15,167 bases of DNA. Source: Macrostomum lignano (taxonomy: Eukaryota). Both the position numbers and the translations under genes were made by a program. The stretch lies in contig NIVC01005259.1 in NCBI GenBank assembly GCA_002269645.1, positions 1-15,167 on the forward strand. The letters run 5' to 3'. The notes under the pieces are model-generated. The model made no database searches. It had not been told where the DNA came from and worked only from the letters and a program-made list of their open reading frames with translations. Shown in pieces: positions 591 to 15,167 of the stretch; position 1 is the stretch's first letter; every line of letters begins with the position of its first letter.

Positions 591-1565
591 AAACGAGACC
601 GAGATAATATGTCCCGGAGACTCCCCCAACGTAAAATCAACGTTTTAGAAAATAAAATTGATGCAGAGTTAAAACCACTTGAGATGAAACCATGTGTGAC
701 CCCTCTATGGACGTAAAACATTTAGGGCTACAAGATGTGTGACGTGAAAGTTCCATAGCAACGCGTCTTGGTTGCCATGGCAAACAAAAAAGTGACTTTT
801 TTTAGACCCGTCCAAATCTTGAATCTCAAAAAATAAGGATTCACAATATGGAGTCAAAAATTGATTGAACCCAACTTTTGGCGAATTTTCAGACCTTCAA
901 GACACTGATTGGTTATTTTCCGCTAAATGCTTACCTTGATAGTAATTCTGTAAAAGTGTGTTTTTTAAGTGTCAAAAAATGCGCATTTTTATCAACTTTC
1001 AACTGAGCTCTGTCATTCTAAACAATGGCACCTGGGACTCTTACATGACGCACGACTTTAACCAAGATACTCACTTTAACTGTACATTCGCACCTGTTAA
1101 TTACATTCGAATATTCGACGGGTAGGTATTCGAACCGAAATAAAGGAAATTCAACCTTGTTGCGAGACTCTAAAAAGTACATGAATGCGGTCATTTAGGT
1201 AAGATCTACATGTTTATAATACATTTTGAGCCGTTTCGTTGCACTGACTCTGAGCCATACACTGCTAAAGTCGATAAACGTGATTTAGGCTATTTTTATG
1301 TATTTTTCATGATACAAATGTACAAAAAATAAGAAACGACGACATGCTAGGAAAATCAGACTTTTTAGGCAAGGTGCACAACTAAATTGCGCACAATATG
1401 TATATTTTGAAATTTCGTCTTAGTTTATTGAAGTCGCTGCCGGTACAGAAATGTACTTTAACGACGGTACGGGGGCTTGCATATCGAACATACTTTTTAG
1501 CCTGTAACTTTTGAGCGGATTACCGGAGCGCGACGCGCTTGGTGTCATTGAACTACATTTTAGAT

Positions 1566-2620
1566 GTACTTTAATTTGAATGTATGTTCGCTGTCATTGC
1601 ACGATGCGTTGTACACCTCAGGTCAGGTCACGTGACTTGCTGGAAATGAAATAATGACTTTGTACCTATACTAAGGATAGGTGAAGCGTAAGAATGAACC
1701 AAAATTTGTACTTATTAGAAACACCTAGATGACTACTGTCAGAAAAAATGATATTCACGTCTGTCAGTTGCAAAATTTTGTTATAATTGACTTTTAAAAT
1801 CGAAAAACGTGATTTTGTGCAAAAACAACCTATATGAGCACACATAGGGTGAAAAATTTATTGATTTTCGCTATGAGGTTCTTAGCTTCCAAGAGCACTA
1901 TTGTGCCCAGTAAACACGTACAGATGACTGCTATCTTCGTTAGTGTGCGAAAATTCGTATTTTTACGCTAATAACATTTACCGAATTACGAGGTTCCGGT
2001 GTTATGCGTTTTTTTGCTATATTTCACGCTGCCATTTATTAACGATGCTACGCCAGGCCTTCAGTGTGGTGTCAATAGTTAGCATTTAAAAAGTGCTTTA
2101 ATTTGAGTGTATGTTCGCTGGCATTGCACGATGCGTTGTACACCTCAGGCCAGGTCACGTGACTTGCTGGAAATGAAATAATGACTTTGTACCTATACTA
2201 AGGATAGGTGAAGCATAAGAATGACCCATATTAGTACTTATTAGAAACATCTAGATGAATACTCTCAGAAAAAGTGACATTCACGTCTGTCAGTTGCAAA
2301 AAAAATTTTTAATTGACTCTCAAAATCGAAAAACGTGATTTTGTGCAAAAACAACCCATTTGAGCACTACATAGGGCGGAAAATATATTAATTTTCGCTA
2401 TGAGGTTCTTAGCTTCCAAGAGCACTATTGTGCCCAGTAAACACGTACAGATGACTGCCATCTTCGTTAGTGTGCGAAAATTCGTATTTTGACGCTATTA
2501 ACATTTTACCGAATTACGAGGTTCCGGTACTATGCGTTTTTTTGCTATATTTCACGCTGCCATTTATTAACTATCCTACGCCAGGCCTTCAGTGTAGTGT
2601 CAATAAATAGCATTTAGCAA
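1566..2620. repeat. Tandem duplication, 2 x ~527 bp, inside the left arm
   Basis: Units start GTACTTTAATTTGAATGTATG (1566) and GTGCTTTAATTTGAGTGTATG (2093). They are roughly 90% identical by eye. A third start, GTGCTTTAA, lies at 2621. Confidence 0.92.
1627..1636. promoter_or_regulatory. GTCACGTGAC palindrome (CLEAR/USF-type E-box), also at 2154-2163, 13163-13172 and 13690-13699
   Basis: Exact 10-bp palindrome, one per 527-bp unit. Motif match only. Confidence 0.35.
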
Positions 2621-4122
2621 GTGCTTTAAGATGACATCATGCGCATTGCGTTGCGTAAAAGTGTGGGTCCACAGTTTCGTAACAAGTTAAAATGACCTGA
2701 TTTCGCAAAAATCTTTAAAACAAAAAATACCAAATAGGTAACTAAAAAGCCTTTTGAAACTGAATAAAAAATGCACATAAAAGTGCTATTTTGTAACGTA
2801 AAAAGTCTTGCGTCCTGCAAAAATCTTCTATGGTGACTTTTTGGAGCCGTGAAGTGTAAAAACGTGCGCATTTTTAAAGCTGTTGAACTTACTTTTTGAG
2901 GTATATTTTGAAAATAGGCATTTTATAAATTGTATAACAAAATTTAATTGAAGAAAGCAATAAGGTAAAATAGAATTCGAAATTATTTAATTTTGAAATA
3001 ATTAAACTGTACATTTCAGTCGTTCTGTTCCTTATAATTTCTACAAAAATTTAAATTTAAATCGGTTATGTTAACAGTAGTTTATTGCTGTAGGACAAAT
3101 TTGACCCCAAATTTTCAAAGCAACTTATCTAAGCAAACGCTATCTAAATCTGAAATATTTTCAAGCTTCAATCTGTAGCTATAATATTCGGTTTTGTTAC
3201 GCTATTTATTCGTATCCTACTACATTATATATAATTATTGTACAATATATTATATTCTACAAGTACAAGTTTTAATTGTAATATATTCAATTGTTATCAG
3301 TTTTACACTGTAAGTGTAAGCTTCAAATTTTATTTGAAATATAACTGAAGTATAGTACTTTAATATTATTTTATAGCTAATTAATTGTATTCTGCCAAAT
3401 ATTTACGTTTTTTTTCTCTGCTTTGCTTTTTGCTCCATATTTTTATAAATTATAGTCATATTTACATATATCTTTTAAAAGTACTCATCCTTTCACATTT
3501 TATTTTGTAGTTATCAGTCAAATTTAACTTGAATTTTCCTTTTGTTTGCATAATTTTGACTTAAGACTTTAGTTTTGAAGTAAGTATTCTTTTTATTTCT
3601 TCATATGTTTAGCATAGTACAAATATCTGTAGTACTCTGCTTAATGGTAGAAGTTTGTGGACACTTTTTATAAATTCTGCTCAATTTATTATAAATTTAG
3701 CATTTTTGCTAGACAATATATACATGCCAATGCTCCTTATATCAAGCAATGCTTGAAAGTGCTAGACACTTAGTTTATGGTGAATTTTTACCAAGGGATG
3801 TTTTTTTGCTGATATAGAATTCCTAGAAGCATGTACAAAAACATGGAATATGCCTGAAAAAACTCTAGAAAATATGCACTAAATCCAAGAAAAAATGTTG
3901 AAAGCACAAAAACTACATGGCACACACCGCCTATATGCCAGTATATTATGCTGCAGCATATTAATCCACAATCCAGTAGCAGTGCTAGTGTTCGTAGTTT
4001 AACTAAATTTGCCACCAGAAAAGAGTTGAGTTAACTTGGTAAAGAGTAGCATGTTTTCTGTGTTTAGCTAATTAGTTTCTTTATCATTCTGAAATATTTA
4101 CTAACATGTTTATTTAGACAGG

Positions 4123-4201
4123 ATGGGCAACGACAAAAACAGCATCAAGGACAACACTAGCATTAACAAGGATACAAGTGCTTCTTCTGTTGCTGCCAAT
4201 A
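4123..4201 (+). CDS. Predicted first coding exon of RepHel (MGNDKNSIKDNTSINKDTSASSVAAN)
   Basis: ATG at 4123, then an open frame to a consensus donor GTAAGT at 4202. The phase-1 end matches the next exon (A+GT = Ser). Preceded by TACTAAC (4099-4105) and a CAG acceptor (4119-4121). Confidence 0.7.
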
Positions 4202-4421
4202 GTAAGTTTTGTACATTTGTTGCAACTTGCAGGTGATAGGTGCTACTTTCAGGAATAGTTTCAAAGCAATCCTACCTTTATTATTAATATTCACACCTTA
4301 GGAAACCAGCTTTTACTAGCATTCTTGGCTGCCCATTTGGGCAACAGACAAACTAAAAAGTTCCTGCACTACACAATTTATTTACCAAACAATAAATCTC
4401 AATTGTTCACACTATAACTCA

Positions 4422-4699
4422 CACTGAATAGTTCACAGGTAATTCTGTAAAAAAGTGTTTTTCAGATGTCTAAAAATGTGAATTTTTCAAACTCTTAACT
4501 GACGCAGCTCAAATCAATAGTTCACACTCAATAGTTTAGATTGAATAGTTTCGCCTGAATAGTTTTGACAGACAGAATAATTTCAACTGAATAGTTACAA
4601 CTGAATAGTTTAGACTTAATAATCTTGACTGAGTAGTTTTGACTGAATAGTGTGAACTCAATAGTTTCGACTGAGTAGTTTCGACTGAATAGTTTCGAC
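4422..4699. repeat. Degenerate 14-bp minisatellite, consensus ACTGAATAGTTTCG
   Basis: Repeated (A)CTGAATAGTTTCG-like units, clearest at 4515-4699 and interrupted at 4437-4513. Confidence 0.85.
4437..4513 (+). repeat. Diverged 77-bp fragment homologous to the inverted arm
   Basis: AGGTAATTCTGTAAAA...AACTGACGCAGCTCAAA aligns at about 80% (by eye) to ~941-1004 and to the reverse complement of ~14344-14420. Confidence 0.85.
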
Positions 4700-4916
4700 A
4701 AAGGGAATAAATTCAATTGGAATCTGACCTTGTTTGACAGATCATTAAAATAATTATAGAAACTCTATTTTCGAATGTTTAACACCCTTAGAATTTGAGC
4801 AGATTTAAGAAATTTTGACCACTGTATAATCAGTGCAAAATCTGCAATAGTTTAGAAAAAACGCTATCAAAATTGATCAAGAATGGCACGCTCTAGAGCG
4901 AAATAGATGGACAGAC

Positions 4917-4937
4917 ATATATATATATATATATATA
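4917..4937. repeat. (AT)10 microsatellite
   Basis: Directly visible dinucleotide run in the predicted intron. Confidence 0.95.
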
Positions 4938-4978
4938 GGTAGATTTATAAATTTCTTTTTTACTGTGACTTTAAACAG

Positions 4979-5350
4979 GTGCGAAAAAGTGCGGACGGCC
5001 GAAGAAGAAAAACTGGAGCCGCTCCAAGAATAATATTAAAGTTGCTGCTGTCGGTGATTTAACTGCTGGCGAAGAACAGATTCAAGAGCCAGATGTACAA
5101 CCGGAAGCTGCTGCTGCCTCTTCTATTGCCGCTGCTGGGACTAAAGCTGGTGCTTCTGCTGATGCTGCTGCTAAAACTGAGTCTGTGATTAAGCTGGACG
5201 AGGCTGGTCTGGCTGCCCTGCTAGCTGAACATGATGCTGCTCTGGCCGACGCTCTGGCTGCTTCGGAATACCCCGTGGTCGAAGGTGATGCTGAAGTGCC
5301 CAATTCTGGTGCTGCTTACAATGAGCAACTTATAGGCTACTTGAGTGCTG
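4979..5350 (+). CDS. Predicted second coding exon of RepHel (AT-hook-like KKCGRPKKK, then an Ala/acidic-rich linker)
   Basis: Acceptor TTTCTTTTTTACTGTGACTTTAAACAG ending at 4978, an open GC-richer frame of 372 nt, and donor GTGAGA at 5351. Phase 1 at both ends, giving an in-frame join G+AT = Asp with the main exon. Confidence 0.8.
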
Positions 5351-5535
5351 GTGAGAGTTTTATTTTTTATTGAATTTCTATGCATAGTACAAGTTAATTT
5401 TCTTTCTTACATCTGACTTTGCTTGCGAATATTGAAAATTAGATTTTAGTGTTTACGACTTGTGCAAAATACAATTAATGCTCAATTCCTTAAAATTATC
5501 ATACCTCACTGTTTAAGAGTTGTATTCTTTTACAG
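5351..5535 (+). other. Predicted GT-AG intron (185 nt)
   Basis: GTGAGA...TATTCTTTTACAG boundaries, AT-rich, phase-consistent. Confidence 0.8.
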
Positions 5536-8500
5536 ATGAAACAGGTGCTACTGCAATGGATTTTGCCGAAGGTCATGTAACTGCTGCTGTACAAGTCCAA
5601 CCTGTATGGGTTCCTTTTTCTTCGTGTCGCGTTGAGAATGTACGAGGTGACGGCAACTGTTTTTTCACGGCCATATTGAGACAATTACAAGAACTGCCAG
5701 GTTTTTCCGCCTATCAATCGCTAAGCGTAGAAGATTTTCGAGATGCGGTTGCTGCAGAATTCGAGCAATGGGTGCATCGCGATGTCAATAATCAGGAAAG
5801 AATTATGCAAACAGGACTGAATTGGGAAAAAGTGCGCGACGATACAAGGCGTCCCCGTATGTACGTGCCATGCGGAGTTCCAGAACTAATTGGTGAACTG
5901 TTGCGGCTAGAAGTGTTTATTTATCAGTCAAACATGCTTAATCTAGCGCGGCCTGGCCATTATTCCCGACCGAATATTGGAGAACGTTTGGCTACTATTC
6001 GATTGTTGTTTAATCCTGGTAGTCAACACTACGAAATCGTTCGTGTCAATGATTTGGAAGTTAATGAAGCAAGCTCAGTTCGGCCGACTGGCCAAGGAGA
6101 TTTGAGCGCCAAGAATGTGGAAATGCCCCCTCTCAACGAGAATGTTCATGTTGTCGAAGATCCTGTTGTAATGATGCCACCTCCAGCTCCACCAATGACG
6201 CCTTTTGAAAAGGTTGCAGACTGGACCCGAGTTCAAAGTAGGCATTGGAAGGGACGTTGTAGAAATCAAGCAAAGTCCTTGGAAAATAATACGAGTTTGT
6301 TTGCGCATCCGAATTCATATGAAGTGCTTCGGGATCGGAACAACTCTGTCTGGAATTGGAATGTCGATCTTGACGCGGAGGATAGCGCAGAGTCAGTTGA
6401 AATTGAGCATGTGTCAGAGTCAGTTAAAAGTGATCGTGTGTCAGAGTCCGTGCCATCAAATGTTCCGCGGCGCAGTCGGCGTAAAAAGGATGTTGGGAAG
6501 GCAAGTTGCGCTACGCGTCGGAGTAGTCGACTGAGCGCTAAAGCAAACACATTAGAGTCTGTGTCTGTTGCAGCCTCTAGTGTATCTGGTCAGAGCTTAT
6601 TGAGAAGAAGCAGTCGCACTCGGAGAGCACCATGTTGCAGTTGCATCGGTTGTGGCGACTCAGTTTCGGCGGTTTCAAGCGTTTCTTGCCATTTGGAAAA
6701 AGGAAGAGGTCGAGAAAAGAAGAGCGACGTTGTACCAAGTGCTCCTACTCGTCGCAGCGAGCGTTTGAAAAACCAGCAGCAAGTGGTCAACTATGCAAAT
6801 TCTTTACCACGGAAACAGAGATTGACAAACGCAGAAAATCATATCTGCGAACCCGTTCGATCGTCGCCTAGGAAGACGGCACCTTTGCAGCAGGAGCAGC
6901 AAGATAAACGTCAGTCTGATAATATTCCAGCTACTTCTACGTATTCATCACCACGAAAGACACGTGCTACTCAGGAGAAGCCTGATGAAGCGATCCGTTC
7001 GTCACCCAGAAAGCGGCCTACAATGGAGCAGCAGCCAGCTAAAGAAAATGTTCCGCAGAGCAGCACTTCAGAAGAGAGCGCTCAAGATGCTCCAATTGTT
7101 GAAGATGAAATCGGAGATCCTAATCTGCCAAAGTGCCTTCGCAATCCGTTCACAGACCAGTTCAAAAAGATGAGGCAAGACTTTTTCAATGAAAACATAA
7201 CAAAAGTATCACATTTGAAACAGTGCTACGTGTGTAGGGAAAAGTTTCCTGGAAAATATTTTAGCATCGATTCTGAAGACATGTGCGATCGTTGTTTCAG
7301 AGATGACAATGAGCCGAAATCGTTTAGCCAAGAAAACAATGCGATTCCGATGTTGGAGCAGCCAGAAGATTTGCAAGATTTGAGTGTAGCAGAGCAAATG
7401 TTGATTTCGCCAGTTTTGTCGGTTATTGTTGTGGTACAAATTTTTCCCCAAAAGCAAACAAAATCGAGAGGACACGGAATCATGTTGCCTCAAGATCAGT
7501 CGCACGTTTTGCGAGAGCTGCCAAGACGATCTCTGCCAGTTGTTTTAATGTACGACGAAAGAGCCCGTGTTCAGCCTGGAGAAGCGCAAAGCGGCACAAT
7601 GAACAATTTGCGAGTTCGACGCGACAAAGTGACTAATGCGATGCGCTATTTAATGGCAAACAACAAGTACTTTAGACAGTATCAGGTTTCAATGAATAAT
7701 GATGCGTTGCTACATCTGCCTGAAGATGGTTATGCTCATCAAGTAGAAGGTATGATTGTCGAAATGCAGTCTGACAATGAAGTGAATTTCGAGGCGGCAC
7801 AGCAAGAAGGCGGCTCAGCCAGAGCTGAGCGATTGCAGCAACAAGTAGAAAAAAATGCGGACGAGACGAACGAGCTCGAGGAAACAATTAGTTCGCTGTT
7901 GGAGACTCCTTTGCGTCGATTGGAATCGGCAGTACGAGACAAATTTTTGAGTGAAAAATTGAAATGGCCAGCAAGAAGCAACGAGCCGGTAAACGAATTT
8001 CAGGATGAAGGATATTTTACATTGGCTTATCCTCATCTCTTTCCGGATGGAGCAGGAGATTATAGTACGCCACGTAATTTTGGACTAAGTTTGGGCGACT
8101 ATGCAAAGCATTTGATGCAATTCCGGTGTCCAAGATTTCGTACCGATTTGCGGTTTAAATTTTACATTGAAAATATGGTGATGCGTTGGAGGGCGCTGGA
8201 AGTTGGTCGCGTGTTTGTACACGACAACAAGTATGCTGGATTAAGTGCCAAGGAAATGATTGAAGCACTAAATGACCCGGCAGTATTGGCTAGCGTGTCA
8301 GTTCGAGCATCAGATTTGCGAGGCACAAGCGCTTATTGGCAGAGTAAAGGACGGCAATTGGAAGCCATGATTCGAACGCTTGGTGTTCCTCATTTTTTCG
8401 TGACACTATCGGCAGCAGATGTACATTGGCCAGAGTTGCAGCATGCCTGGGGAATCGATGCAGAGCAATATGAAAGCAATGTAGAACTAAGAGCAGAAAT

Positions 8501-11500
8501 GTTGTCAAAGTTGCAAAAAGATCCCGGAATGGCAGACACTGTGTTTTGGTTGCGATTTGAAACATGTTTGAAACGTTTTTTGGTCGAGCACTGGAAAGTA
8601 AACGATTATTGGTTTCGCATAGAATATCAGAGTCGCGGAAGTCCACACGTTCACGGTTGCATTTGGATGCCAGATGGTGTTGATGTGACATCGAATACAT
8701 TGAATGCAGAAGAATTGACGAGCTTTGTTGACAAGTACATCTGTAGTTGGAATTTGGCCATGGACGAATCGGATTATGGAAATCAAGTTTTGAATGGCAG
8801 TTTAGCAGGTCAAGGTCATCCAGCTCAACTGAAACCGGAAGAGATTGAAAATGACAAGCAAGATTTGCAGTTAATTTCGCATTTGACAGAGAGGCACACT
8901 ATTTGCAGTAAAAAGTGCTTGCGAACAGTAAAAGGCAAACAAGAGTGCCGATTCAAGTATCCGCGCGAGCCGCAGGAAAAGACTGTTGCAAAGCGAGTAT
9001 CCCGTTTAAATTGGCAAGTTGAGACGCAGCGCAACGACGAGCGAATGATTTCTCACAGTCCGCAGTTGCTGTGCATGTGGAGAGCCAATGTCGATGTTCA
9101 AATGATTTCGTCCGTGAAGAATTTGATTCGCTATTTGATCAAGTATGCGACAAAAAGCGAAAAGGAGTCGGATTATATGGCGGAGCTGACAAAGCGTCTT
9201 CATAAGGAGTTGGAAGATAATGCAGAACAGAATGCCGATAACAATTTTCAGCGTAGCAACACTGCAAGGCGTGTTGTACAACAACACTTGATGGCGCAAG
9301 TTGGAGCGCGTGATTATTCGGCGCAAGAGGCAATGCATTTGCTATTGCAGACGTCAATGTACAAGGGTTCGCGAGAATTTGTTTTTGTTCAGACTGGCGA
9401 AACCCGCGCAGTGGAGGAAAAGGGTGTTTGCAGGAATAGTTGCGACAAGTATTCAAAGCGTGCAAAGAATTTGGAAAATGTAACAATGTTTCGTTTCTTT
9501 TCCGACTACTGTCTCAGCCCTAATGGGAGGTGCACAAAAAGGCCGAAACAAGTAGTTTTGCTAATCAGTCCATTTTTTCGACCGAATGAGCAATCAGACG
9601 AAAGACGCGAAGGCTATTATCGGCAGCAGGTTTTGTTGTACAGTTGTTGGCGAAATGAGCGAGAAGCCAAAGGTTTGCACACAAGCTGGCAGCAAGCGTA
9701 CGAAGCCATGCCTGCTGAGAATCGATGCGAGCTGCAGCTGCCCAATTTGGACGATTTGCGCAACGACGAAGCTGACGAAGAAGTCGAAGCAGTTGCGGAG
9801 CTACCCGAAATGACCAACGCAAATGCGCAATCTGCTGCTCAGCCAACTTATGAGCACGAAGAGCAAGAAGATTGGATGGTTGCAGTGGGGGCACTTCATC
9901 GCGAGAGAAATCTATTGGCCTGTCCAGAAGATCAATTGCCAAAGCCGCCAGAAAATTTTGACTGGAGCGCAGCTAGTGGCGGCCAGTTTCCAACGGTTGG
10001 AGAAGCAAAGGCGTTTTTAAGTAGCGACCTAAAACTTGGCGCAAGAGAGGTCGCTGACATGCCGATAAACAGTGTTGAATCGCTTAATGTTCGGCAGCGA
10101 GAAATGTACAACCTAATTGAAAGTCATTTGCAGCTTTCAAGACTAGCCGAAGAAAACCAAGGCGAAAAGCCGGAGCCTCTCAAAGCAATTTTGTATGGTA
10201 GCGCTGGAACTGGAAAAAGCTACTTGATTTCTACATTGCGTCGGTTGATTGGAGAATCAAGATGCAGAATTATGGCATCAACAGGCGTAGCCGCTTTCAA
10301 TATTGCAGGCGAAACTTTGCACTCGGCTTTGAAATTGAATGTAAATTTTAGTGCTGGTGTTGGCAAGAAATCCCTAATGGAGATGCAAGAGCAGTGGAAA
10401 GATGTGCGCTACATTTTTATTGACGAATTTAGCATGCTTGGCCAAAGGTTACTCCGTAAGGTGGATGCTCGTTTGCGCGAATTGTTTCCAGAACACAGTA
10501 AACAGAGTTTTGGTGGTCGATCTGTAATCCTAATTGGCGACGTGTTTCAATTGCCTCCAGTTTTGGACACGCAACTGTACGTTTACAATCCAAATCAAAA
10601 GAAGCACGATATATTGAAATCTGAAGGCTATAAATTGTACATGGAGTTCAAAAAGGTTGTGCATCTGACAGAACAAGTCCGACAAGCAAACGATACGGAA
10701 TTCGCCCAGTTGTTGGATAAACTTCGCGAAGGCAAGGCCGACGAAGCCTGCTGGAATTCGTTGATGAACAATTGTCGCGTCTATGCTCCCGACCTTTTGC
10801 CTGAAGGTTTCCAAAGCGGGTGTACATTTTTATATCACACTAACGAGGATGTGAGAAATCGCAACTACATGCTATTGGGAAAGATGGTTTCCGAATTGAA
10901 TCCTGTGCGGCAAATTAACGCAATTTGTAAAGGAGACGAAGCAAAATTGTGTGGCAAAAAGAAGGAACATAAAAAATCGGATACGAATCTGGAGAAGCGA
11001 CTCTATTTGTGTATTGGTGCTCGAGTAATGCTAACTAGAAATCTGTCAGTACGCAATGGACTTGTGAATGGATCAGTTGGAACTGTACGAGGAATTTGCT
11101 ACGCTCCTGGAAGGCAATCACCAAAGGATTGGCCAGATTGTATTTGGGTTGAATTTGACAATTATTCTGGCCCAGCAATGGGGGCAATTGTACAAGATAA
11201 TCGTGCAATTCGTGTAGTGCCAATTCTGTCAGTAACGAATGAAAAGTTTAAAGGAGGAGCCCAATTGTCGCGTCAACAATTTCCACTACGATTGGCTTGG
11301 GCTAGTACGATTCACAAGAGCCAAGGACTTACAATTCCAAAAGCGTACGTGGCGTTTAGCAAAGGAGGCGCCAGGAAAGCTATTCCAGCTGGATTATTTT
11401 ATACTGCGGTGAGTAGAGTTCGTGCATTTGCAGATTTGCGAGTATCAAGTTGCGATTACAACAATTTCGTGAGCCTTTTTTCTGCACAAAAAGTGCAGAC

Positions 11501-11564
11501 GCAGTTGCATGAGCAAAAGCGTTTGCTGAGAATGTGCTCATCCGCGAATTCTGATAGCCGCTAA
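5536..11564 (+). CDS. Helitron RepHel transposase, main exon (OTU - basic linker - C4 ZnF - DUF6570-like - HUH Rep - PIF1 helicase)
   Basis: About 6 kb with no stop codon. Rep motifs FFVTLSAADVHWPEL, RIEYQSRGSPHVH and YLIKYATK. Helicase motifs GSAGTGKS, IFIDEFS, GDVFQLPPV, QFPLRLAWASTIHKSQGLTI and YTAVSRVR. The 5' boundary is set at the acceptor TTCTTTTACAG (AG at 5534-5535), not at the TTG at 5520. Confidence 0.95.
5630..6040 (+). other. OTU-like cysteine protease domain of RepHel
   Basis: VRGDGNCFF motif (Cys codon 5658-5660) and distal QHYEIV (His codon 6027-6029), matching the OTU D-x-x-C...H pattern. Confidence 0.85.
7224..7295 (+). other. C4 zinc-finger-like motif (CYVC...CDRC)
   Basis: Two CxxC pairs just upstream of the DUF6570-like/Rep region. 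Confidence 0.65.
7350..7690 (+). other. DUF6570-like region
   Basis: The pattern LQDLSVAEQMLIS...GHGIMLPQ...LPR...LRVRRDKVTNAMRYLMANNKYF resembles, from memory, the domain found N-terminal to Helentron/Helitron2 Reps. Not confirmed by an HMM search. Confidence 0.6.
8380..9155 (+). other. HUH/Y2 Rep endonuclease core
   Basis: Motif 1 HFFVTLS, motif 2 EYQSRGSPHVH (8622-8654), motif 3 YLIKYATK (9132-9155) with both catalytic Tyr present. Confidence 0.92.
10180..11430 (+). other. PIF1-family (SF1B) DNA helicase domain
   Basis: Walker A GSAGTGKS (10197-10220), Walker B IDE (Asp codon 10422-10424), GDxxQLPPV, and motifs V/VI TIHKSQGLT and YTAVSRVR. Confidence 0.95.
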
Positions 11565-11577
11565 CTTGCTATTCTAA

Positions 11578-12280
11578 AGTCGGCAACTATTTAGTCAGCA
11601 ACTATCCATCCAGTCAGCATCCGTCCAGTCAGCAGCCGTCAGTCAGCAACAATCCAGTCAGCAACCATCCAGTCAGCAACCATCCAGTCAGCAAACATCC
11701 ATCCAGTCAGCAACCATTCGTCCAGTCAGCATCCATCCAGTCAGCAACCATCCAGTCAGCAACCATCCAGTCAGCATCCGTCCAGTCAGCAGCCATCCAG
11801 TCAGCAACCGTCCATCCAGTCAGCAACAATCCAGTCAGCAATCATCCAGTCAGCAACCATCCAGTCACAACCATCCAGTCAGCAGTCATCCAGTCAGCAA
11901 CCATCCGTCCAGTCAGCAACCATCCGTCCAGTCAGCAATCATCCGTCCAGTCAGCGACCATCCAGTCGGCAACCATCCAGTCACAACCATACGTCCAGTC
12001 AGCAACCATCCAGTCAGCAACCATCCAGTCAGCAACCATCCATCCATTCAGCAACCATCCAGTCAGCAACCATCCAGTCAGCAACCATCCAGTCAGCAAC
12101 CATTCGTCCAGCAACCATCCATCCAGTCAGCAACAATCCAGTCAGCAACCATCCAGTCAGCAAACATCCATCCAGTCAGCAACCATTCGTCCAGTCAGCA
12201 TCCATCCAGTCAGCAACCATCCAGTCAGCAACCATCCAGTCAGCATCCGTCCAGTCAGCAGCCATCCAGTCAGCAACCGT
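11578..12280. repeat. 15-bp minisatellite, consensus AGTCAGCAACCATCC, with variant units
   Basis: Begins 13 bp after the RepHel stop codon. Some units carry ATCC/GTCC insertions. The + strand is strongly C/A-rich. Confidence 0.97.
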
Positions 12281-12705
12281 TGTAGAAATTATAAGGAACA
12301 GAACGACTGAAATGTACAGTTTAATTATTTCAAAATTAAATAATTTCGAATTCTATTTTACCTTATTGCTTTCTTCAATTAAATTTTGTTATACAATTTA
12401 TAAAATGCCTATTTTCAAAATATACCTCAAAAAGTAAGTTCAACAGCTTTAAAAATGCGCACGTTTTTACACTTCACGGCTCCAAAAAGTCACCATAGAA
12501 GATTTTTGCAGGACGCAAGACTTTTTACGTTACAAAATAGCACTTTTATGTGCATTTTTTATTCAGTTTCAAAAGGCTTTTTAGTTACCTATTTGGTATT
12601 TTTTGTTTTAAAGATTTTTGCGAAATCAGGTCATTTTAACTTGTTACGAAACTGTGGACCCACACTTTTACGCAACGCAATGCGCATGATGTCATCTTAA
12701 AGCAC

Positions 12706-13760
12706 TTGCTAAATGCTATTTATTGACACTACACTGAAGGCCTGGCGTAGGATAGTTAATAAATGGCAGCGTGAAATATAGCAAAAAAACGCATAGTACC
12801 GGAACCTCGTAATTCGGTAAAATGTTAATAGCGTCAAAATACGAATTTTCGCACACTAACGAAGATGGCAGTCATCTGTACGTGTTTACTGGGCACAATA
12901 GTGCTCTTGGAAGCTAAGAACCTCATAGCGAAAATTAATATATTTTCCGCCCTATGTAGTGCTCAAATGGGTTGTTTTTGCACAAAATCACGTTTTTCGA
13001 TTTTGAGAGTCAATTAAAAATTTTTTTTGCAACTGACAGACGTGAATGTCACTTTTTCTGAGAGTATTCATCTAGATGTTTCTAATAAGTACTAATATGG
13101 GTCATTCTTATGCTTCACCTATCCTTAGTATAGGTACAAAGTCATTATTTCATTTCCAGCAAGTCACGTGACCTGGCCTGAGGTGTACAACGCATCGTGC
13201 AATGCCAGCGAACATACACTCAAATTAAAGCACTTTTTAAATGCTAACTATTGACACCACACTGAAGGCCTGGCGTAGCATCGTTAATAAATGGCAGCGT
13301 GAAATATAGCAAAAAAACGCATAACACCGGAACCTCGTAATTCGGTAAATGTTATTAGCGTAAAAATACGAATTTTCGCACACTAACGAAGATAGCAGTC
13401 ATCTGTACGTGTTTACTGGGCACAATAGTGCTCTTGGAAGCTAAGAACCTCATAGCGAAAATCAATAAATTTTTCACCCTATGTGTGCTCATATAGGTTG
13501 TTTTTGCACAAAATCACGTTTTTCGATTTTAAGAGTCAATTATAACAAAATTTTGCAACTGACAGACGTGAATATCATTTTTTCTGACAGTAGTCATCTA
13601 GGTGTTTCTAATAAGTACAAATTTTGGTTCATTCTTACGCTTCACCTATCCTTAGTATAGGTACAAAGTCATTATTTCATTTCCAGCAAGTCACGTGACC
13701 TGACCTGAGGTGTACAACGCATCGTGCAATGACAGCGAACATACATTCAAATTAAAGTAC
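12706..13760. repeat. Mirror copy of the 2 x ~527 bp tandem duplication in the right arm
   Basis: Reverse complement of 1566-2620. Confidence 0.92.
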
Positions 13761-14310
13761 ATCTAAAATGTAGTTCAATGACACCAAGCGCGTCGCGCTC
13801 GGTAATCCGCTCAAAAGTTACAGGCTAAAAAGTATGTTCGATATGCAAGCCCCCCGTACCGTCGTTAAAGTACATTTCTGTACCGGCAGCGACTTCAATA
13901 AACTAAGACGAAATTTCAAAATATACATATTGTGCGCAATTTAGTTGTGCACCTTGCCTAAAAAGTCTGATTTTCCTAGCATGTCGTCGTTTCTTATTTT
14001 TTGTACATTTGTATCATGAAAAATACATAAAAATAGCCTAAATCACGTTTATCGACTTTAGCAGTGTATGGCTCAGAGTCAGTGCAACGAAACGGCTCAA
14101 AATGTATTATAAACATGTAGATCTTACCTAAATGACCGCATTCATGTACTTTTTAGAGTCTCGCAACAAGGTTGAATTTCCTTTATTTCGGTTCGAATAC
14201 CTACCCGTCGAATATTCGAATGTAATTAACAGGTGCGAATGTACAGTTAAAGTGAGTATCTTGGTTAAAGTCGTGCGTCATGTAAGAGTCCCAGGTGCCA
14301 TTGTTAGAAT

Positions 14311-14356
14311 GACGCAGCTCAAAGGTCGCGCTGACGCGCGACCTTTGAGCTGCGTC
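14311..14356. other. Perfect 21-bp-stem, 4-nt-loop hairpin inside the right arm
   Basis: GACGCAGCTCAAAGGTCGCGC-TGAC-GCGCGACCTTTGAGCTGCGTC. Confidence 0.95.
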
Positions 14357-14574
14357 AGTTGAAAGTTGATAAAAATGCGCATTTTTTGACACTTAAAAAC
14401 ACACTTTTACAGAATTACCTATCAAGGTAAGCATTTAGCGGAAAATAACCAATCAGTGTCTTGAAGGTCTGAAAATTCGCCAAAAGTTGGGTTCAATCAA
14501 TTTTTGACTCCATATTGTGAATCCTTATTTTTTGAGATTCAAGATTTGACGGGTCTAAAAAAAGTCACTTTTTT

Positions 14575-14609
14575 GTTGCCATGGCAACCAAGACGCGTTG
14601 CTATGGAAC
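14575..14609. promoter_or_regulatory. Two adjacent RFX X-box-like motifs (mirror copies at 750-785)
   Basis: Perfect palindrome GTTGCCATGGCAAC (14575-14588) and GTTGCTATGGAAC (14597-14609). Motif match only; no functional evidence. Confidence 0.4.
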
Positions 14610-14767
14610 TTTCACGTCACACATCTTGTAGCCCTAAATGTTTTACGTCCATAGAGGGGTCACACATGGTTTCATCTCAAGTGGTTTTAACTCTGCATCA
14701 ATTTTATTTTCTAAAACGTTGATTTTACGTTGGGGAGTCTCCGGGACATCTTATCTCGGTCTCGTTT

Positions 14768-14808
14768 GTCCGGAAAAATTGCCAACGAGGAGCGAAGCGA
14801 GCGAAGCG
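14768..14808 (+). repeat. Truncated copy of the terminal hairpin, in direct orientation relative to 519-560
   Basis: GTCCGGAAAAATTGCCAACGAGGAGCGAAG is identical to 519-548 on the + strand, although the adjoining arm is inverted. Confidence 0.9.
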
Positions 14809-15167
14809 TCAGTCAGCAACAATCCAGTCAGCAACCATCCAGTCAGCAACACATCCAGTCAGCAAACATCCATCCAGTCAGCAACCATTCGTCAGTCAGC
14901 ATCCATCCAGTCAGCAACCATCCAGTCAGCAACCATCCAGTCAGCATCCGTCCAGTCAGCAGCCATCCAGTCAGCAACCGTCCATCCAGTCAGCAACAAT
15001 CCAGTCAGCAATCATCCAGTCAGCAACCATCCAGTCACAACCATCCAGTCAGCAGTCATCCAGTCCAGCAACCATCCGTCCAGTCAGCAACCCATCCGTC
15101 CAGTCAGCAATCATCCGTCCAGTCAGCGACCATCCAGTCGGCAACCATCCAGTCACAACCATACGTC
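14807..15167. repeat. Second, direct copy of the 15-bp minisatellite (copy of ~11637-11995), running off the window
   Basis: Same order of variant units (AACAATCC, AAACATCCATCC, AACCATTCGT, AGCAGCCATCC, GTCACAACC, GCGACC, GTCGGCAACC, ATACGTC). Confidence 0.95.

Follow-up and report, generated by a model that had tools for sequence, protein, structure and literature searches.

We analyzed a 15,167-bp stretch of Macrostomum lignano DNA (the window, which is the whole of contig NIVC01005259.1 in assembly GCA_002269645.1, our locus L021) and found that positions 14768–14808, which form half of a large hairpin termed H1, are inverted relative to the arm that they adjoin. Judged from its sequence, the window carries one copy of a very young, apparently intact Helitron2-type (HLE2) rolling-circle transposon, and the half hairpin reads as the end of a 2.53-kb fragment of the 5′ region that lies inverted within the element's own 3′ satellite, and not as a second terminus. 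Along the window, the features are as follows.

1–504, no strand: host flank, ending in CTAGT (500–504); homology to other copies begins near 489–500
505–518, forward: 5′ terminus with a 13-nt asymmetric terminal inverted repeat, AGGTCGAAGTGCA (506–518), whose reverse complement lies near the 3′ ends
519–590, forward: left copy of H1 (inverted repeat I20), with outer arm 519–544, loop 545–564 and inner arm 565–590
591–3046, forward: left arm, a conserved non-coding 5′ region that precedes the gene, always in this orientation, in every copy extending this far
4123–11564, forward: RepHel gene with introns (gene models P0041 and P0042; Pfam and motif scans)
11578–12279, forward: 3′ satellite with a 15-bp unit, CCATCCAGTCAGCAA, and a higher-order period of ~484 bp, cut at junction J1 (Tandem Repeats Finder)
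12280–14767, reverse: right arm, 2.49 kb, the reverse complement of 591–3046 (repeats I1–I16 and alignment)
14768–14808, forward: half of H1, comprising outer arm S1 (14768–14793) and loop bases 1–15 (14794–14808), ending at junction J2
14809–15167, forward: resumed satellite, a near-exact direct copy of 11638–11995 with single-base indels only, running to the contig end

We compared the window pairwise with real copies, rather than with a family consensus sequence, using 19 other locus records of the family (L001, L003, L006–L020, L022 and L023; ~400 kb in total) that are ~99.9% identical to it across the shared parts. L003 and L017 are probably a single locus, to judge by their sequences, because a 5′ flank and a rearrangement are common to both. 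A sister family is represented by L002, with a protein identity of 46–64%.

In its canonical form, H1 consists of a 26-bp stem with one G·T mismatch, which results from the asymmetry between the outer arm (GTCCGGAAAAA) and the inner arm (TTTTTTCGGAC) in this family, and a 21-nt purine-rich loop of GAGCGAAGC repeats (fold of −31.9 kcal/mol, z = −9.4). The left copy in the window carries private changes in its loop and inner arm when compared to nine canonical copies, and its DNA fold is −27.4 kcal/mol (z = −7.8). At the right end, a mirror image would present, after GGTCTCGTTT, the reverse-complemented inner arm and a pyrimidine-rich loop, but the sequence continues with the outer stem arm and then with the purine-rich GAAGCGAGCGAAGCG.

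A first-pass annotation of the window had already read this hairpin half as inverted relative to its arm, and the sequence is as it described: positions 14768–14797 are an exact direct copy of 519–548 (repeat family D16). Its statement that the right end matches the left hairpin is correct over these positions, but the 41 bases as a whole belong to the family-typical hairpin and not to the left-copy variant, as they are 41/41 identical to the canonical hairpin in L003, L009, L010, L013, L016–L020 and L022. It had also taken two asymmetries to be diagnostic, of which the loop sense stands, while the CG/GC difference is not diagnostic alone because it is private to the left copy, whose inner arm ends in CGCGAC. 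The inversion is supported twice, because the right end has both the canonical loop sense and the outer-arm form of the stem. Chance does not explain it, because 15 consecutive loop bases have the wrong sense and the configuration recurs at three junctions in other loci.

Apart from some homopolymer indels, a single substitution, private to the right arm, separates the two arms over their inner 2 kb. In the outer 500 bp, the right arm agrees with the other copies and the left arm has private changes. No minus-strand arm was found in the 19 other loci (~400 kb), and the window alone has one. Likewise, the k-mers that span J1 and J2 were not found outside the window among these loci, and the satellite runs uninterrupted past the point matching 12279 in every other copy that reaches it. 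J1 (12279/12280) has 1 nt of microhomology and J2 (14808/14809) has 2 nt (CG) with the satellite. One variant site sets L003 apart from all other arms; shared variants tying the right arm to L010, L012 or the left arm were not informative, the arms being too similar. The nested insertion of a second copy into the satellite was considered and rejected, as the inverted piece has neither element end and the satellite has no CTAGT.

Element ends and loop orientation

Throughout the family, the pentanucleotide CTAGT stands before each 5′ end and also closes each 3′ terminus. The flanks upstream of the 5′ CTAGT all differ (L003, L009, L010, L012, L016, L018, L019, L020 and L022). The 11 distinct 5′ ends have one layout, CTAGT/T-AGGTCGAAGTGCA followed by H1 and then by AAACGAGACC and the arm, within differing host flanks. 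At 10 other loci, the 3′ ends consist of TGCACTTCGACCT, which is the reverse complement of the 5′ repeat and lies ~35 nt before the 3′ end in 10 copies, followed by GCTA, a 5-bp hairpin (AGGTG-GCA-CACCT) and TCAATCTAGT, beyond which the flanks diverge. These 3′ ends were seen in L001 and L006–L014 (for example, at ~17080 in L006). From these comparisons, the element's true 3′ end lies outside the window.

The first-pass annotation had proposed that two 2.4-kb arms with terminal hairpins bound the element. This proposal is not supported, as the right arm is absent from the 19 other loci and the 3′ end has a different structure. The premise of a linear, hairpin-ended, Rep-encoding replicon in an animal genome is gone, and in its place is an ordinary, if very young, Helitron2-type transposon. 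H1 itself is subterminal; it begins 19 bases after the start of CTAGT, which places it 14 bases inside the 5′ end if cleavage occurs at CTAGT/T.

Helitron2/HLE2 elements are expected to insert between T and T, with no target-site duplication; here, all 5′ junctions read CTAGT/T, and the 3′-terminal CTAGT is followed by T in 6 of 10 loci. The presence of CTAGT at both ends suggests that cleavage always takes place 3′ of CTAGT, and the pattern also suggests that the target mimics the element's 3′ end, similar to bacterial HUH transposons. In the sister family, the 5′ region has a homologous layout, and a tail-to-head junction (L002, 20652–20780) has a 3′ end abutting the next 5′ end, as expected of rolling-circle read-through. 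When folded, this junction forms a terminal-repeat stem that encloses the 3′ hairpin, leaving CTAGT/T unpaired and H1 directly adjacent.

We scored the loop orientation at each true 5′ end (n = 11) and found 10 canonical loops, including the window's variant left end, one mosaic (L012) and no clean inverted, or flop-type, loop. If orientation were randomized 50:50, one or fewer non-canonical loops among 11 would have a probability of ~0.006 (binomial). Both loops of the sister family are canonical (2/2). The near-equal numbers of the two isomers that the first-pass annotation had named as support for hairpin transfer are thus not seen in the family, and neither is whole-hairpin inversion: a complete inverted hairpin was found nowhere among the loci, where inverted loop pieces are 4–18 nt long.

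The internal junctions that retain loop bases show the opposite bias, with 4/4 being flop-type.

Window, right end: 13–15 loop bases kept, joined to satellite
L010: 14–15 loop bases kept, joined to arm in direct orientation
L023: 6–7 loop bases kept, joined to an inverted upstream segment
L022: 4–5 loop bases kept, joined to coding region in direct orientation

The first-pass annotation had listed uniqueness of the inverted form to the window's junction as adverse to its reading; the form is not unique, as flop-type remnants are present in L010, L012, L022 and L023. All four flop-type breaks lie 0–2 nt 3′ of a GCGAAGC motif in the loop. They fall into two groups separated by one 9-nt repeat unit, with the L022 and L023 breaks earlier than those of the window and L010, which coincide within 1–2 nt. 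Next to the arm, the window and L012 have a stem of the outer-arm type, and L022 and L023 have one of the inner-arm type; both types would be expected if the mismatched S1/S2 stem can be resolved either way. The mosaic L012 has a perfect 32-bp stem and a loop mostly of the opposite sense. Among the loop-retaining junctions, the canonical-sense 3′ part of the loop was never seen on the inner arm, although simple joining after a break in a canonical loop would produce that arrangement.

L011, L019 and L020 have further junctions, which map to the base of the hairpin or to the interior of its inner arm, and L003/L017 has one in a second palindrome. Across the 20 loci, the 5′ hairpin is the dominant site of rearrangement, with at least nine junctions in or at the hairpin or the second palindrome. 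Seven loci have direct partial duplications of the 5′ region (L003/L017, L010, L011, L015, L019, L020 and L022), all with different upstream partners. The second copy of the duplicate starts in or at H1 in L010, L011, L019, L020 and L022, in the second palindrome in L003/L017 and deeper in the arm in L015.

Proposed strand turn-around at the hairpin and competing explanations

We consider it reasonably probable that a DNA strand turned around at the hairpin, either at a capped end or by a U-turn of the replication fork, and that the loop was then opened and joined to another end. A turn-around is required because what the junctions carry is the loop's 5′ part, reverse-complemented, and not its 3′ part in canonical sense. 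By this mechanism, the strand complementary to the arm would become continuous with the outer stem arm and the loop. Three routes could produce this continuity: an extruded cruciform could be resolved into hairpin-capped ends; complementary-strand synthesis on a folded single strand could be ligated to the 5′ hairpin at its base once a short flap has been removed (14 nt if cleavage is at CTAGT/T); or the polymerase could make a U-turn between the two stem arms. The loop would next be opened, and its 3′ tail would be trimmed to the nuclease-resistant GCGAAGC mini-hairpin. Finally, the end would be joined to a break in the satellite through 1–2 bases of microhomology, and the fragment's other end would be joined likewise.

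We infer all of these steps (turn-around, opening, trimming and joining), and they would match the documented behavior of short inverted repeats. Fold-back inversions and hairpin-capped intermediates have been documented at such repeats (PMC7467729, PMC10766183), and the homogenization of arms with inversion of the spacer is a signature of template switching at inverted repeats (PMC8604942). GCGAAGC is a mini-hairpin motif that is extremely stable, nuclease-resistant and found at single-strand replication origins, and mini-hairpins of this kind resist exonucleases (PMC13037366). Turn-around followed by trimming and joining would account for the variable breaks linked to the motif, for both stem types, for partners in either orientation and for the junctions with resected stems. 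The first-pass annotation had offered template switching at a quasi-palindrome as its main alternative, and that suggestion comes close to the explanation we favor. The flop-type scars would then be direct sequence evidence of in vivo strand turn-around at H1, and they provide a descriptive handle on Helitron2 5′ ends as single-stranded DNA, a poorly known subject.

Several observations weigh against this mechanism or limit its detail. The data fit the end joining of a capped end and serial template switching by a polymerase equally well. A RepHel nick just upstream of H1 (14 nt if at CTAGT/T) may supply the initial lesion, but this trigger is purely our inference. No complete arm–hairpin–arm palindrome was found in the ~400 kb of family loci, which contain only cut-down derivatives. 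The link between break points and the mini-hairpin is suggestive, with only four loop-retaining junctions. The satellite sequences flanking the insert are out of phase and a stretch of 173–642 bp is repeated, so that a clean capture does not explain the event and additional steps are needed. Lastly, J2 was read from the assembly and falls within the final 2.9 kb of a 15-kb contig that is error-rich at both ends.

A more specific and decidedly tentative version is that the flop-type scars record a parvovirus-like turn-around intermediate of Helitron2, in the form of linear, hairpin-capped extrachromosomal DNA. RepHel would nick the 5′ end, the displaced strand would fold its hairpin and the complementary strand would become covalently joined to that hairpin; the loop of the capped linear molecule would then be opened and the DNA recaptured at chromosome breaks. 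If such an intermediate exists, H1, with its conserved GCGAAGC loop, would act in strand-specific recognition and would at the same time be the chief source of the family's structural variation.

Sequence conservation in the sister family bears on the recognition role. L002 has an unrelated stem of 21–22 bp, yet both of its copies have the same loop core, GCGAGCGAAGCG, in the same sense. Because the loop motif has been kept despite the unrelated stem, H1 probably serves RepHel or a host factor as a strand-specific recognition structure, and the core is a candidate recognition motif common to two families. In more distant relatives from ENA metagenomes (L004 and L005, 32% identity), one GCGAGCGAAGCG 12-mer with a 4-bp mini-stem is present at 21503–21514 on the minus strand; it lies on the opposite strand, 7 kb downstream of the gene, and was not used as evidence.

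It is unlikely that the right 2.9 kb came from a chimeric read or from a mis-join of near-identical copies and has no real locus. Several facts make an artifact conceivable: the window is an entire small contig built from noisy PacBio reads, copies are alike to ~99.9% and numerous contigs break within the arm or satellite, extra single-base indels are present at both contig ends, and J1 and J2 are seen nowhere else. However, a read with a missed SMRTbell adapter would yield a palindrome of the directly preceding sequence, and we rejected this source because the inverted segment does not mirror, as a reverse complement, what stands directly before it. An artifact would also need two separate junctions, and the inner 2 kb of the right arm is clean, with one private substitution. 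Moreover, L010 (on a 75-kb contig) has a break within 1–2 nt of the window's and the same inverted configuration, and L022 (341 kb) and L023 (208 kb) bear the same type of scar. The process is therefore probably biological, because the same scar type occurs on much larger contigs.

Somewhat harder to sustain is an explanation with no turn-around at this junction, whereby the loop had already been inverted in place by template switching between the stem arms of an L012-like source, of which the right arm would simply be a truncated copy in inverse orientation. When reverse-complemented, the L012 hairpin does present an outer arm and the same 15 loop bases before diverging, L012 and the right arm both have the perfect inner-arm form ending in CCGGAC, and template switching is known to homogenize arms while inverting the spacer. 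On the other hand, this explanation leaves the 4/4 inverted junctions unaccounted for, L022 and L023 have the canonical inner arm rather than the L012 form, and the window and L010 would have to have been truncated independently at one and the same loop position. The right arm and L012 also have no shared substitutions.

It is very improbable that RepHel cuts the conserved loop, as a cryptic second cleavage site, and transfers the Rep-linked end to other DNA. Conservation of the loop core between families with unrelated stems would fit such a site, as would the coincidence of the window and L010 breaks within 1–2 nt and the placement of all four breaks at equivalent positions of the 9-mer repeat. 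But the element boundaries in 11 loci are at CTAGT/T upstream of the hairpin, the context of the breaks is unlike CTAGT, and the junctions show microhomology together with filler T-runs (L011 and L020) that are typical of end joining. The inverted sense is not explained by cleavage alone, and a single fixed nick position in the loop is weakened by the L022 and L023 breaks, which occur one repeat unit earlier.

Parvovirus-like terminal resolution, which the first-pass annotation had put forward and in which RepHel nicks beside the stem and hairpin transfer generates flip and flop at each replication, is scarcely credible: RepHel is an HUH enzyme with intact motifs, half of a hairpin is inverted relative to its arm and inverted loop pieces recur in L010, L012, L022 and L023, but the hairpin is not at the physical terminus, the second arm is missing from the 19 other loci, the true 5′ ends depart from a 50:50 mixture (10 canonical, one mosaic and no clean flop; P ~0.006), the inverted pieces are 4–18 nt long at rearrangement junctions with no complete inverted hairpin, both sister copies have the same orientation, and the helicase is of the PIF1 type and not the superfamily 3 (SF3) type of parvoviral Rep.

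The transposon and its genomic context

The assignment to HLE2 draws on the coding region and the termini; in HLE2, the 5′ repeat is terminal and the 3′ repeat is placed 20–30 nt from the end, ahead of a hairpin. The last RepHel exon is a 2014-codon open reading frame (5520–11564) with no stops or frameshifts. A Pfam scan of RepHel matched Helitron_like_N (1e-29), PIF1 (7e-27) and DUF6570 (PF20209; 2.5e-18), the last of which has been reported as a marker that splits HLE2 from HLE1 (PMC11417382). The motif scan found the HUH motif SPHVHG, the two-tyrosine motif RYLIKY and the Walker A motif GSAGTGKS, and the N-terminus has an OTU-like Cys box. The nearest RepHel relatives are M. lignano proteins. 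The same Pfam scan gave no match to Exo_endo_phos (apurinic-apyrimidinic endonuclease), whereas distant fish and metagenome homologues do carry an endonuclease domain. As its RepHel has no such domain, the element is therefore not a Helentron variant.

Both arms contain further repeats. A 527-bp unit is present twice in tandem in each arm (1540–2634 and 12692–13786; 88–95% identity), and the corresponding position in the sister family holds an 883-bp unit. A second perfect palindrome, H2, lies ~430 bp inside the right arm (14312–14355; 20-bp stem, −29.3 kcal/mol); all copies carry it and the sister family conserves it, but its core is missing from the window's left arm. Positions 4432–4513 are 84% identical to the arm around this palindrome, in the same orientation, and 4516–4719 hold 12 units of a 14-bp tandem repeat; both are also found in other copies. 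For an 81-codon open reading frame within the arm, a product look-up aimed at further arm copies returned no gene on record.

Satellite length varies from ~1.6 kb to >6 kb among copies that are otherwise 99.9% identical (L001 and L006–L020). L001 was considered as the window's own locus, having 1 mismatch to it in 8.25 kb, but its satellite differs. Two copies depart from the common structure in other ways: L023 has an unrelated insertion of ~1.25 kb (~7867–9122), and L008 is 5′-truncated, its arm beginning part-way in, upstream of 7828.

The assembly was made from PacBio reads with Canu and polished with Pilon, and the M. lignano genome is highly repetitive and partly duplicated (PMC5730564). 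The window's contig is among the smallest of this 764-Mb assembly. Many other contigs begin or end within the element, in the arm, hairpin or satellite (L001, L006, L007, L011, L013, L014, L015, L019 and L020). The family is a frequent cause of assembly breaks, and users of the M. lignano assembly should expect that contigs often break or rearrange within the element.

Comparison with known systems

The terminal hairpins of adeno-associated virus (AAV), parvoviruses and densoviruses resemble this system in having an HUH Rep and an imperfect palindrome of variable orientation, and covalently closed turn-around ends are a plausible shared intermediate. In contrast to the viral hairpins, H1 is subterminal in an integrated transposon, is present at one end only and has a fixed orientation at true ends. 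The inverted pieces here are partial and are found only at rearrangement junctions, and the helicase belongs to another family.

Fold-back inversion (PMC7467729) and origin-dependent inverted-repeat amplification (ODIRA; PMC10766183) likewise give rise to inverted duplications that have a short inverted repeat as their pivot, with the spacer in one sense at the pivot and microhomology at the far junctions. Inverted duplications pivoting on the hairpin are seen here in the window, as the right arm with its half hairpin, and in L023, as the inverted upstream segment joined to the hairpin. The differences are that the second half of the palindrome is missing here and that the loop of the pivot was cut open and the end attached to satellite 11 kb away in the same element.

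Template switching at inverted repeats (PMC8604942, PMC8794818, PMC5453318) corresponds to the perfected stem and inverted spacer of L012, and the loop inversions at junctions are the product expected of a switch between stem arms. Unlike the documented cases, the spacer here is 21 nt long and internally repetitive, and most events are tied to kilobase-scale duplications and not to clusters of point mutations.

Known Helitron2 elements have asymmetric terminal inverted repeats and hairpins at both ends (PMC3627910). The present element agrees with Helitron2/HLE2 (PMC3627910, PMC11417382) in its protein, which has an HUH-Y2 Rep joined to a PIF1 helicase, DUF6570 and an OTU-like N-terminus, and in its ends, which have a 5′ hairpin, short asymmetric terminal inverted repeats of which the 3′ one precedes a small 3′ hairpin, and a satellite close to the 3′ end. 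The tail-to-head tandems of the sister family are a further point in common. It differs in that H1 is far larger (26-bp stem and 21-nt loop) and lies beside the terminal repeat instead of including it, in the conserved GCGAAGC-type motif of the H1 loop, and in the presence of CTAGT at every 5′ junction and every 3′ terminus.

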